A stretch of DNA of 59,236 bases, the filler included, from Platydemus manokwari (lineage: Eukaryota), in assembly GCA_037951405.1 (NCBI GenBank). It is 5 parts of 5 records of this genome, joined end to end, with 100 filler letters (N's around TTAATTAATTAA, not from the genome) between each part and the next. Parts side by side here need not be neighbours in the genome. Positions count along the whole stretch, not along the records: positions 38,068 to 49,458 come from JBBMOY010707762.1; 4 more parts are not named here. One strand, given 5' to 3'. The position numbers and the translations under genes were made by a program. Every line of letters begins with the position of its first letter. The first letter of the stretch is position 1. This document shows positions 40,420 through 45,429 of this stretch, piece by piece. Under the pieces are notes generated by a model, which had not been told where the DNA came from, searched no databases, and saw only the letters and a program-made list of their open reading frames with translations.

Positions 40420-41360
40420 ACATTATGGGAAAATTTAAACAAACATATAAACAAAGCTGCGCTTTGTCCCTTGTCTCAAAACAGTCTCAAATTTTAATAA
40501 AATCACAAACAATCTTTTAATCAATCGTTATTATTGGTTTATTTTAAGATGATTACTTATATAACTATTGGTAATTCCATCTCTTATTTATCTATATCTC
40601 AATGGTTTTATCAATAATTTTCATTAACGTTGTTTAAATTTGCAAAGATTGATTATTTCGAGCCCAAATATCATCGAAATATTTATCTTCTAATATTATT
40701 CTGATTTTTGTGTAATTCTGATTTCTATAATTATTTCAAACCAAATTATTTTTCAATTTCCATTACCGAACTCTTAGAAAATAATATATTTAATGATTAA
40801 TTGAGTCAAATTAAATTTGATATTATATTATAATTATTATATTATTTTTGTATTATTTAAAATAAAAAATCATAATTTTAGAATTGAAATTTTTTATCCG
40901 AAATCAATGACTTGAACGATCACAAGTTGCAACAAAAATTAGCATCACCTTTGTTCTAAAAATTCCGCAAATAACGGTTTTTTTGCTATTAGTAATTCAT
41001 CTGAAATTTTGAAAAATAAAAACTTCTCTATCACAATTCTCATAATCATCATCATATCAACCGATATTTGAGACCAACAGTTTAAAATTCAGAAATTGCT
41101 AAATCTGTTAATAAACACATATTTTTTGTGACTGACACAGTATTATGTCAGTTTTCAAATTTCCACGTTTTCATTCAACAATAATAAATTAAAAAAATTA
41201 TAAATTATTGAAATTTTTAAGAAGCAATTCATTCAGAAACAAATGTTTGTTAAAAATTTACATGTGAAATATATTTACTCTATTTGAAACGTTCCACTTG
41301 GCAATATTCTGTACGCTTAACAATACTATAGTGCTCATAGTATTACCGCACACAGTCAAT

Positions 41361-41376
41361 CCAAATAATATAAATA
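41361..41376 (+). promoter_or_regulatory. TATA-containing element conserved upstream of both secreted-protein genes
   Basis: ccaaataatataaata is identical at 41361 and 43747, starting 56-57 nt upstream of each ATG. Confidence 0.6.
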
Positions 41377-41417
41377 AATAGCTTTCAGAAATATATTTCA
41401 TATTTTTTTTGATAATA

Positions 41418-41794
41418 ATGAAAATATTTATTATTTTTGCAACTTGTTTTCTAAGCTCAGTGTATTCCTATCTGATTCATGGTTACGGCTACATTGAAAA
41501 TGGTTATTATCATTACTTGATATATTTTGAATATTTATTTTTCATTATTTAAGGAAAAGGTTACTTTAAATTAGATGATAAAGTGTATCCAGATACAGTG
41601 GGACATTTCGAACATCGTGCTCAAGGTAGGTGTCTCAAATGCTCTGTTCGGCCATCTAAAGATGGTGTAGAAAAACCGCATTTCTCATGCGCTGGGTAAA
41701 TTTTATAATATTTAATATTTGATTCCAATATTCCTTTAGCCCTTCATTAGCTGTTTTAAACGGGAAAACACTATACATACCAGTTTGCAAATGA
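41418..41794 (+). CDS. Small secreted Cys-containing protein A, 93 aa; exons 41418-41502, 41554-41695, 41740-41794
   Basis: GT-AG introns of 51 and 44 nt give the open frame MKIFIIFATCFLSSVYSYLIHGYGYIENGKGYFKLDDKVYPDTVGHFEHRAQGRCLKCSVRPSKDGVEKPHFSCAGPSLAVLNGKTLYIPVCK*. It has a signal-peptide-like N-terminus, a downstream AATAAA and a paralog with identical intron positions. Confidence 0.85.
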
Positions 41795-42599
41795 TCAATA
41801 ATAAAGTTTTCTGCTTTATTGAATATTGTTAATGATATGTTATTGAATAAATATATCTGAACATGATTTCATCTCATTATTAATATATATTTGAAAATAA
41901 TAATAAAATTTGTCTCTTAGCTTCTTATATTTATTGAATCGATATTTCTAATCTAAAATTTTTAAACCTATTAGCTGCTAAGACCTCTTCACTTTTAAGG
42001 TTAAAATCAAAACTCATAATTCGCAATGTGTAAGAATATATTTCATATTAAATATCATTTAAACAAATACTCCATCTTTAATAATTTATATAAAAATATT
42101 TTTAGACATTTTGATGTTTTTAAATTTGAGAGCTTACAATAAATGTCTGAACAAGATACCTAAATTTTTAATATAATATATAATATTAAAAATATTTTTT
42201 ATAAATTATTTAATTTAATTTTTTTTAAAATAATTAAATTATTTTAAAATCATTTAATGATTTGTAAACTAATTTAATTTTAATTTTAAAATTATTTAAT
42301 TTAGATTTAAAGCATCACAAAATCCATGCTCCTGTTTGAAATAAATCCAGTCATCTAAAAAGCATTATATATTATATCTTTATATATCTTTATATCTTCA
42401 AAATCTTGATAATAATGTTAATTAGAATATATCACTACTGCCACACCTATTGCCTTAAGGCTGCGCGAGGTGAAGAAACATCAACATAAGATGTGTATGT
42501 ATAATCTTTTACAATATCAATTTAATTATGATTACATGATAACTTCATATAAAAATTATTTTTTTCAGAATTTATCAAGTATCTTCATTGCTATTTCAT

Positions 42600-43260
42600 G
42601 CAAGGATAAAAAAAGGTATTATGAATAAAATATGAAGTTCATTGATAGAGATCAATGGATTTATAATTTATACCAAATAAACGTTACAATTTTTATATCT
42701 TATTAACAAAATCTAATTTACTAGATGTATATATTCATAATAAAATTATAAATTAATACTTATATACATAAATGGTCAAAGCCATTGCCAATATTGAAGA
42801 TTTTATTCCGGGTAAAATTCTTTGAAATCCCAATATATTTGTCGTTACCTCATGGAGATAAGAAATGAATTGAAAATTTAACATATGAAATACCTTTTAT
42901 TAATGATCATGACTAAAATCGCGACTTAAAAATATAAAATCAATTTATATATGGAGTTGATTTAGAATATCACAAAATTACTGATGAAAAAACGGAATAT
43001 TTACCATTAGATAAAGAAAATTAAGATATGTTGGTTCTTTATCTTATAAAGAAAGATAATATTTTTTAGAAAAGTAAAGTTGACTCAAAAATAAATATAA
43101 ATATATTGCCCTGGGTAATAATGTAATTTTTGTTTATTTCATGGAATAGTATTAAAATGATTCGTAGAAAATTACTTATAAAAACGAAAAGTTCGCTTAG
43201 AAATTATGTGAAATTTGATTTTAAACGAAGAAAGAAATTGAAAAATGAGAGAATCAACCA
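42600..43260 (+). mobile_element. Degraded Polinton pPolB central fragment between the two secreted-protein genes
   Basis: SLPHGDKK*I (cf. LPxGxFxW), FIYGVDLEYHKITDEKTEYLPLDKE (cf. ILEVDLxYP..HD..PLAPE) and HGIVLK..LRNYVKF..KRRK. Confidence 0.6.
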
Positions 43261-43802
43261 AGTATTGTTGGCATGAATGGAGATAGTAAATATTTAACTA
43301 TTGGTGAAAAACATTATGGATGTATACTATACCTTACCAGATAAACACATTAAAAGGACATAGTTTTGATAGCTAAACCAAACAATAATACGTATCATTT
43401 TTCAGAATTCCAGTATATCTTGGTTCTTTATATTATTTTATAATCTAAAACACTTTGAAATTCGAAAATAATTAAATTTATTAATATATTAAATCCTAAA
43501 CTGTGTTAGACAGTGTTATAATATTATTTGTTCGTCCTGCTTTCAATAATCATTAATAAATTAAATTAAATATAGCACATATAAATATTTAATTGTCTCT
43601 GATAAAGAAATCGATTACAGAAATAAAGAATACTTATAAATCATTTACATGTAGAATATTTGATTACAATTTAAAACTTCCGCGTGGTAATATTCCATCA
43701 ACTAAACGATATTGTGCTAATCATGAAATCTCCGGATGCAATTTTTCCAAATAATATAAATAGATTTCTTTCACATTTATATTTCATATCATTATTGTGA
43801 TC

Positions 43803-44186
43803 ATGAAAATATTTATTGTTTTAATATCTTGTTTGTTGAACTCGGTATTTTGTGCAAAATCTTTTGGTATAGGCTACTTTGAAAATGGTTATCATTGCGC
43901 ATTTATTGAATTTCAAATTATTCTTGATTATTTAAGGCAAAGGATATGTGAAGATAAACGGTAAAGTATATCCAGATACTCAAAAAGTTGTACAATACGG
44001 AACAGGCGTTGGTTGTACTAAATGCTATGTTTACCAAGGTATTTCTGGTATAAGGATTATATTTATGCCCACATTCCAGTGTCATCAGTAAATAAAATAT
44101 ATTAATCAATATTAGATTGTAATGTTACTTTCAGTGCAAGTCCAGCGATGATAAATGGGAAAAAAGTTTATTTACCACCATGCTGA
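43803..44186 (+). CDS. Small secreted Cys-containing protein B, 95 aa; exons 43803-43887, 43937-44087, 44135-44186
   Basis: Introns of 49 and 47 nt, in the same phases (1, 2) as paralog A, give MKIFIVLISCLLNSVFCAKSFGIGYFENGKGYVKINGKVYPDTQKVVQYGTGVGCTKCYVYQGISGIRIIFMPTFQCHHASPAMINGKKVYLPPC*. Confidence 0.85.
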
Positions 44187-45429
44187 TGATTAATAATAAA
44201 TATTTGTGTTCTATCATTGATTATTGTTATTGATATGTTCTTGAATAAATATATCTCAACATGATTTCACTTCATTCATAATTGATGATTATATTCGGTA
44301 AATAAGAGAATAAGCGTTATAAATTGAAACTTACAAATTAAAGTTAAAATTTGAGAAATGTCATCACATGATTTATAGAAGTCATCCCAGTGAATGTTTA
44401 TTTTTGTGACAATACTCTTAATTAATGAAAATCTAAGAAGTGCACAATATGCTCGCAGTTTGAATTTCCAAATAAATATAAATATATTATCACCAGTCTT
44501 AACTTTTCTGAGTTATCTAACGGCAATAAAGAATTTCAAATAAATAGAATAACAGTATCTTTACCATAAAATCAATAATTAAACCCTGATATTATTACTG
44601 CTTTAAATAATTATTTATAATTTCATATAGATTTCTTTGATCCTTTCATCCCATTTATATTTGTAGATGTTATTCTAATTAAGTGTTTAAATTCAAATCT
44701 ACAAGTTGCGACTTCATTAAATTTAATGCAAAATTGATATTGTTTAATCATGACTACAAGGTATTGTTCAAATTTTAAAACATTGACTTTTCCTTTATTA
44801 TTAAGACAGCTAATTTTGAAAAGATTCAGCACTATAATGCAATTCTTGTTCACGGACAATTAATTTTAAAAATTTCTAAAGCTAATTTATTAAACTTTAT
44901 TATCTATATAAAGTTTGTTTTATGTAAGATTGAAACCTCAACATCAAATTTTGCAAGAATTTTTATTTTATTTGTTGATCATTTTCAATTTGTATTCTAA
45001 TGGAATAACATATTAATATATTAGACCGGAATCGATTCAAATTTAAATGGTTTTTGATTTTTTTTTCGTTTATTACTTTTCAACTTTTTATTTTATCTTC
45101 GATGTTATTGTTACATATAACAAGTATTTTCTGTCAATACGTGAAACATTATAAAGACAAAATCTGTATTAAAATGAAAATTTTTGATATAATTTATTAT
45201 ATTTGATAATTTTAAAAATGAGGGGTACTATTATTCCCTTCCAAGCAGTGAGAGAAATTTTGGATTAATTACTTTGATTTTCAGTGGAACTATGTTATCT
45301 TTTACACTGGCTTCCACATATTTTTATAGCATTACGATATTATTTTGGATTCTTTGATTTGAAAAAAAATTATATTTTAAGTATATTTACAAAATGAATT
45401 AATTACGGAAAATATTGGTATTGTATCAG

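Follow-up and report, generated by a model that had tools for sequence, protein, structure and literature searches.

The DNA analysed here (the window) is a stretch of 59,236 nucleotides (nt) from Platydemus manokwari, joined from five parts of five records of GenBank assembly GCA_037951405.1. The part that concerns us (38068-49458, from JBBMOY010707762.1; positions count along the window) carries two intact three-exon genes on the plus strand, g1 at 41418-41794 and g2 at 43803-44186, whose exons were assembled by script from the sequence (Table 1). Their coding sequences of 282 nt and 288 nt specify proteins of 93 and 95 amino acids (aa), respectively, and all four introns are short (44-51 nt), running from GT to AG, and their acceptors are rich in T. 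In both genes the first exon has 85 nt, which places intron 1 in phase 1, and exons 1 and 2 together span 227 nt in g1 and 236 nt in g2, which places intron 2 in phase 2. Without splicing, both frames meet a stop inside intron 1. Rebuilding the genes in this way bears out an earlier prediction, made from the same DNA, of two intact genes with common intron positions and phases. The same prediction held that the open reading frame (ORF) track misses them, which needs qualifying, as the mechanical ORF list does contain a 55-aa ORF over g2 exon 1.

The two proteins are identical at 41 of 95 residues (BLASTP; expectation value (E) 2e-24), reproducing the count originally made by manual alignment, and share none of the 11 residues that precede the first mature Cys (0/11), again as first reported. 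The scaffold that they were said to have in common is present as described, except that the spacer from the third Cys to the NGK motif is 8 residues long and not 6. At the DNA level, the recognisable duplicated unit covers about 0.7 kb (~41169-41884 and ~43541-44282), with a start-to-start distance of ~2385 nt. The proposed tandem family comprises exactly two copies in this piece: neither tblastn with both proteins nor nhmmer, run with a profile built from the two aligned units, found a third copy in 38068-49458. Scans of the piece for Rfam families, tRNAs and tandem repeats returned nothing bearing on g1 or g2. The gene region is AT-rich, with a G+C content of 18-27% over 40068-45567 that rises to 35-45% in both flanks.

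Table 1. Positions of g1, g2 and their associated features, counted along the window
Feature	Position	Strand	Description
g1 upstream region and core promoter	41169-41417	+	TATAAATA at 41369-41376; initiator-like TCATATT, A at 41400
g1 exon 1	41418-41502	+	start codon, 17-aa signal-peptide-like segment, first 11 mature residues
g1 intron 1	41503-41553	+	51 nt, GT..AG, phase 1
g1 exon 2	41554-41695	+	conserved KVYPDT block, divergent 11-residue loop, C-x-K-C, third Cys
g1 intron 2	41696-41739	+	44 nt, GT..AG, phase 2
g1 exon 3	41740-41794	+	NGK..Y.P.C tail with fourth Cys, TGA stop
g1 3' untranslated region	41795-41871 (~77 nt)	+	48-nt block 41824-41871; AATAAA 41846-41851
g2 upstream region and core promoter	43541-43802	+	TATAAATA from 43755; initiator-like A at 43786
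g2 exon 1	43803-43887	+	signal-peptide-like segment and beginning of mature protein
g2 intron 1	43888-43936	+	49 nt, GT..AG, phase 1
g2 exon 2	43937-44087	+	about half of residues match P0002 (52% or 50% in two alignments)
g2 intron 2	44088-44134	+	47 nt, GT..AG, phase 2
g2 exon 3	44135-44186	+	ends in TGA stop
g2 3' untranslated region	44187-44269	+	conserved 48-nt block 44222-44269

We searched for relatives with exon-wise sequences and with the homologue that they retrieved. A HMMER search of 1.84 billion representative proteins (E up to 1e-3), for which the query was a profile of just the two exon-2 sequences, gave four matches, of which one is a true relative: P0002 (UniParc UPI000607A495; E 9.1e-5), an unnamed protein of 77 aa. 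The remaining three (P0001, P0003 and P0004) are repetitive or low-complexity sequences and were rejected. When P0002 is aligned to spliced g1 and g2, the alignment extends over all of the mature region, taking in the parts encoded by exons 1 and 3, which lay outside the query, and is continuous across both predicted exon junctions. P0002 is identical to g2 at 37 of 74 positions (50%) and to g1 at 24 of 74, with 23 invariant columns that include all four Cys. In P0002 the motifs VYP.DT, C.KC, P.F.C and N.K..Y...C are retained, and 6 of the 11 loop residues agree with those of g2. The bit score of 70 between g2 and P0002 corresponds, by our own estimate, to an E of ~1e-8 against the whole library. 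These figures refer to the full-length alignment, which we take as the reference; exon-wise alignment with MAFFT sets KGY, with which exon 2 begins, under the SGY of P0002.

P0002 is the sole sequence relative that we found, one among ~15 billion proteins in all collections searched. Word-index protein searches with P0002 or with the family alignment, which were run in addition, returned P0002 itself only, its 90% cluster has a single member, and there is no encoding contig on record for it. The exon peptides and P0002 had no match in Pfam (E up to 10), and a sequence profile search of the PDB gave zero matches (E up to 10). Among protein-language and Atlas look-alikes, exon 2 had no usable match and P0002 scored only 0.81, which is noise level. 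No relative was found in metagenome contigs, searched with the peptide pattern, in prokaryotic genomes or in 2.9 million viral contigs, and a full-text literature search for the peptide motifs of the family found no paper. A match to an already characterised family, which would have spoken against novelty, was thus looked for in Pfam, the PDB and fold searches (described below), and none was convincing. The family is undescribed, as had been proposed, and very narrow in public data.

Given the outside homologue, the coding constraint and the core promoter and 3' end found in each copy, g1 and g2 are supported as real-looking spliced genes of a protein-coding family. That they are instead chance ORFs or dead pseudogenes is extremely improbable. 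The only run that matches the locus (X1) is of DNA type and the collections searched hold no identical annotated protein, as might be the case for dead copies; against this, the reading frames, four splice-site pairs, intron phases, start and stop codons and all Cys have been kept despite saturation at synonymous sites, and P0002 is an independent homologue.

We evaluated the age of the duplication and the selection acting on it using Nei-Gojobori counts; this analysis covers two DNA sequences and one protein. Between g1 and g2 there are 35.8 differences over 59.8 synonymous sites and 79.2 over 216.2 non-synonymous sites, a ratio of non-synonymous to synonymous divergence (dN/dS) of 0.42 (chi-square ~10.6, our own calculation). 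The synonymous proportion, pS 0.60, is saturated and lies near the ceiling for the base composition. Identity in the intron interiors is 0.63-0.66, where shuffled sequences give 0.57-0.58 (z 2.8), and DNA past the poly(A) site is at its null (0.55 vs 0.54). Saturated synonymous sites together with intron interiors near chance indicate that the duplication is old. The low nucleotide identity of exons 2 and 3 (59%, compared with 72% for exon 1) is simply as expected of old paralogues.

Constraint is unevenly distributed along the protein. By region, dN/dS is 0.27 in the N-terminal block, 0.75 in the 11-residue loop, 0.82 from C.KC to the third Cys and 0.21 in the C-terminal block, with a value of 0.43 for the mature region as a whole. 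The codon comparison thus suggests that a coding core comprising GY.E.G, VYP.DT, C.KC, P.F.C and N.K..Y...C is under purifying selection, while the loops are relaxed, none of them above a dN/dS of 1. No excess over 1 was seen in the mature peptide, a weak test with two sequences and pS at 0.60, and because synonymous divergence is saturated dN/dS can neither prove nor exclude positive selection.

In contrast to the coding exons, parts of the non-coding DNA have remained closely alike. Each gene is preceded by a TATA element and an initiator-like sequence, and the distance from the start of the TATA element to the initiator-like A is 31 nt in both. Transcription would accordingly be expected to begin at 41400 in g1 and at 43786 in g2, giving predicted 5' untranslated regions (UTRs) of 18 nt and 17 nt. 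The upstream sequences align with a z of 7.1 over -250 to -51 and are 75% identical over -50 to -1; the conserved blocks are the TATA region, the initiator region, TTCC.C.TGG.AATATTC near -125 and TTTACATGT near -175. At the other end of the gene, the first 80 nt of the 3' UTR are 80% identical, and the 48-nt block is identical at 45 of 48 positions (shuffles 0.56 +/- 0.04; z 13), which confirms the earlier observation that only three positions differ. A CA 20 nt past AATAAA, at the end of the block, is the likely cleavage site, so that the block would form the final 48 nt of the mRNA. Similarity past the block fades in ~13 nt. A 39-nt core pattern of the block, with 3 mismatches allowed, matches two places only in the window, where 0 are expected, and the exact block has no relative in metagenome contigs. 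Both copies can form a small hairpin whose loop contains AAUAAA; it is no more stable than shuffled sequences (z -0.5 to -0.7) and we therefore do not claim an RNA structure for the UTR. Elsewhere in the spacer and downstream DNA, 26-nt AAATAAATATAAATATATT stretches at 43085-43110 and 44466-44491 resemble the TATA region of the two promoters. Neither is followed by anything resembling an exon, and chance similarity within AT-rich DNA probably explains both.

Both the promoter blocks and the final 48 nt of the predicted mRNA are conserved far above the neutral level, and the most likely explanation, judged from the sequence pattern, is a common cis-regulation kept by selection. We also considered that local gene conversion between the tandem copies, rather than constraint, made the 3' UTR and promoter alike. 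Copies 2.4 kb apart in direct orientation are a good substrate for conversion, and a single short near-identical tract (45/48) stands amid saturated DNA. The tract, however, begins within the UTR and stops at the predicted poly(A) site, a transcript boundary. Conservation is, moreover, graded, from 94% in the block core to 80% across the UTR and 63-75% upstream, and its separate blocks, set between diverged exons and introns, would need several short conversions that spared the coding sequence. On balance we regard gene conversion as a quite improbable source of the similarity.

Comparison with P0002 allows the divergence to be assigned to one of the two genes. Over the 74 shared columns g1 has 14 unique changes and g2 has 1 (chi-square 11.3), and since g2 is nearer to P0002 (50%) than to g1, the divergence is mostly that of g1. 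The alignment would fit either a duplication older than the split from the organism of P0002 or an acceleration of g1 alone. In either scenario the variability belongs to one gene, g1, and not to the whole family. The original description of the loops as hypervariable is not supported by this comparison, in which 6 of the 11 loop residues are common to g2 and P0002. Nor is that of a rapidly diversifying family, given the overall dN/dS of 0.42, the two loop values and the saturated synonymous sites. A loop dN/dS at or below 1 had been named in advance as evidence against diversifying selection, and this is formally what was found, although saturation weakens the test.

Toxin families known for accelerated evolution include conotoxins and snake PLA2, the snake genes having conserved introns. 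Such families resemble g1 and g2 in being small secreted disulfide proteins encoded by duplicated genes in which conservation is higher in the signal region and UTRs than across the mature coding sequence. The same order is seen here, with identities of 0.80 for the 3' UTR (0.94 for the block) and 0.75 for -50 to -1, compared with 0.59 for exons 2 and 3; introns, at 0.63-0.66 in their interiors against the null of 0.57-0.58, do not outconserve the exons in the manner of snake PLA2. In the sea-anemone BDS peptides, UTRs are likewise more conserved than coding regions, and Ka/Ks is >1 (PMC3853724). Here the families part: theirs have Ka/Ks >1, whereas g1 and g2 give a dN/dS of 0.42 with loops at or below 0.82 and saturated Ks, and one of the two copies, g2, is well conserved with respect to an outside homologue. 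From these comparisons, g1 and g2 appear to resemble the accelerated-evolution toxin class superficially and cannot be filed there.

It is consequently unlikely, in our assessment, that g1 and g2 belong to a rapidly diversifying family of secreted effectors (toxin, antimicrobial, immune or pheromone) with positively selected loops and a fixed signal peptide, Cys pattern and UTR, as was first proposed. Several observations do fit such a family: the 3' UTR (80-94%) and exon 1 (72%) are more alike than exons 2 and 3 (59%), the loop shares 0 of 11 residues and has a higher dN/dS (0.75, and 0.82 in the next segment) than the flanking blocks (0.27 and 0.21), the excess of unique changes in g1 is compatible with acceleration of one copy, and the predominance of UTR over coding conservation is documented in the BDS toxins. 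An alternative contig of g1 exon 2 adds three non-synonymous and three synonymous differences, which are too few to interpret. Set against these are the lack of any region with dN/dS >1, at synonymous sites whose saturation means that they cannot show positive selection; intron interiors near chance, unlike the snake-venom pattern; the 50% identity of g2 and P0002, loop residues included; the presence of two copies only within the piece; and a charge that is not conserved, which counts against a cationic antimicrobial peptide.

At the protein level, residues 1-17 consist of M-K followed by a 13-residue hydrophobic core, with grand averages of hydropathy of 1.64 in g1 and 2.16 in g2, and the -3/-1 residues are V/S in g1 and V/C in g2. 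Both N-termini thus have the charged start, hydrophobic core and small -3/-1 residues of a signal peptide by heuristic features, in line with the original description of them as signal-peptide-like. The predicted mature proteins of 76 aa (g1) and 78 aa (g2) have a mass of ~8.5 kDa and exactly four Cys each. Their isoelectric points are 8.95 and 9.42, respectively, compared with 4.64 for P0002, and the corresponding charges at pH 7 are +4.1, +6.9 and -4.2. Given that g1 and g2 are basic but P0002 is acidic, a conserved cationic, membrane-active mode of action is unlikely, and membership of a cationic antimicrobial peptide family was rejected for want of a conserved positive charge.

We modelled the mature domain by running AlphaFold2 on P0002 with a shallow family alignment, and a second time with exon-1 and exon-3 fragments added. 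The best models of the two runs are all-beta with eight strands and equal topology, at a mean predicted local distance difference test (pLDDT) of 75.7 and 77.5. On this modelling the mature protein probably folds as a small all-beta domain of eight strands. Searches with the model returned no convincing neighbour: Foldseek against the PDB gave a best E of 0.32, the ESM Atlas structure search gave TM values of at most 0.57, to bacterial hypotheticals, and the viral structure models of BFVD held no match to the predicted fold. An exhaustive VIA structure search ranked fibronectin type I modules first, with a best Z of 3.7 over 45 residues that the tool itself rates as background, and other small disulfide beta modules came next at a Z of 2-3, also background level. 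The best structural neighbours overall, fibronectin type I, vWC, beta-microseminoprotein and tick CirpT1, are, like the predicted fold, small secreted all-beta disulfide modules; they differ in Cys spacing, and their Z of 2.2-3.7 over 41-60 residues is at chance level. Membership of the fibronectin type I family (PF00039) was rejected in view of that Z value and of the lack of a Pfam fn1 or VWC match. As far as the models allow, the resemblance to small disulfide beta modules is one of general type only.

Together these data allow us to propose, as the probable explanation, that g1 and g2 are old tandem paralogues of a lineage-restricted secreted family under common cis-regulation, and not fast-diversifying toxin-like genes. 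The copies lie ~2.39 kb apart, and each would be a compact RNA polymerase II unit of ~0.47 kb, in which a TATA element and an initiator, at the canonical distance of 31 nt, precede three exons that are split by two mini-introns and followed by an AATAAA signal. The 8.5-kDa product would probably enter the endoplasmic reticulum by way of a cleavable signal peptide of 17 residues, and its four invariant Cys would form two disulfides holding the eight-strand beta domain. The protein is then probably secreted and may act extracellularly as a binding or ligand-type protein, a function at which we can only guess. Both genes would depend on equal cis-regulation, with cell-type-specific transcription as one layer and control of 3'-end formation, stability or translation as a second.

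Several observations weigh against this proposal. P0002 is recorded without a signal peptide, beginning at the equivalent of residue 20, although it may be a truncated gene model. Its acidic character (pI 4.6, against basic g1 and g2) shows that mature charge is not conserved, so that the chemistry gives no clue to a specific activity. The other four AlphaFold models of each run scored 45-68 on an alignment three sequences deep, for which reason the eight-strand fold is provisional. The conservation of the UTR could stem from local gene conversion rather than from constraint, and X1, the sole public run to match the locus, consists of DNA contigs that span introns and spacer and are thus uninformative about splicing.

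A bolder interpretation would add to the old, co-regulated pair a taxon-restricted family with an unseen small beta fold, an ancient, nearly invariant 48-nt element at the 3' terminus of the mRNA, older than the saturation of synonymous sites and introns and acting in a type of secretory cell as a dedicated post-transcriptional module (for localisation, stability or translation), and a g1 in fast adaptive change; we consider this combination speculative and rather doubtful.

Invertebrate and other eukaryotic genomes commonly contain orphan, tandem-duplicated genes that encode small secreted cysteine proteins, and such genes often serve defence, venom, adhesion or signalling. The most fitting description of the pair is that of a new orphan family, of a common gene kind, whose products are small secreted beta proteins stabilised by disulfides. 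Cataloguing this unannotated family helps to annotate the genome. Less routine is that neutral sites are fully saturated while the mRNA 3' end is 94% identical and promoter blocks are conserved, a contrast that marks candidate cis-regulatory elements. As it stands, the pair changes no general view and opens no long-standing question, and amounts to one modest curiosity.

The surroundings of the two genes are of a different character. The left flank (38500-40170, minus strand) has a G+C content of 41-45% and stop-interrupted ORFs, one of which (38786-39169, minus strand, 127 aa) matches the Monjiviricetes viral fusion glycoprotein family PF24664 over profile positions 4-116 (E 3e-9); this remnant appears truncated near 38500, where G+C falls. 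A second decayed element, with many stops and frame changes, occupies the right flank (45400-49200, plus strand), and its ORF at 47198-47419 (plus strand) matches PF24664 over profile positions 51-102 (E 3e-9). No other Pfam domains were found in the ORFs of the right-flank element. The two remnants are 44-50% identical at the protein level and, from their sequence, look like decayed endogenous virus-like or retroelement insertions.

Given these neighbours, g1 and g2 could be cargo or remnants of the flanking virus-like or transposable elements, an idea that draws on the decayed PF24664 ORFs in both flanks and on a high-copy repeat adjoining the 3' end of g1. It is nonetheless very improbable. 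The flank remnants are stop-filled, lie on opposite strands and are only 44-50% alike, and their G+C of ~40% differs from the 22-27% of the gene region; g1 and g2 carry their own promoters and poly(A) signals, and neither the 2.9 million viral contigs nor the viral structure models held a relative. The neighbourhood is repeat-rich, with no sign that the two genes belong to an element.

The repeat in question spans 41886-42491, adjoining the g1 poly(A) region. Here the summed contig depth in X1 leaps from ~10-40 to 1,100-50,800, the mark of a very high-copy repeat, whose borders are lined by many loose ends. Some of the repeat is of low complexity and rich in AT, with tandem units of 19-39 nt at 42191-42310.

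X1 also differs from the window within the two genes. A 136-nt contig over g1 exon 2 (41574-41709) has six differences, namely H46D, R54T, H71Y and three that are silent. Those in g2 are a silent one at 43992, fixed in the run, A83G at 44146, one in the UTR at 44217 and the loss of 2 nt from intron 2 at 44118. All of these represent either alleles or near-identical extra copies. Depth over the genes (41381-41784 and 43906-44280) is 25-87, or 2-8x that of the spacer at 42492-43400 (7-13), and peaks over the g2 3' UTR block. This hints at more copies, at least 95% alike, elsewhere in the X1 genome, although the depth figure is not a copy number.

Two shorter repeats complete the picture of the piece. 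A 40-nt unit occurs twice, with 92% matches, at 40340-40418 in the AT-rich spacer to the left of g1, and a 33-nt unit occurs twice at 46360-46427, inside an acidic 195-aa ORF of the right-flank element.

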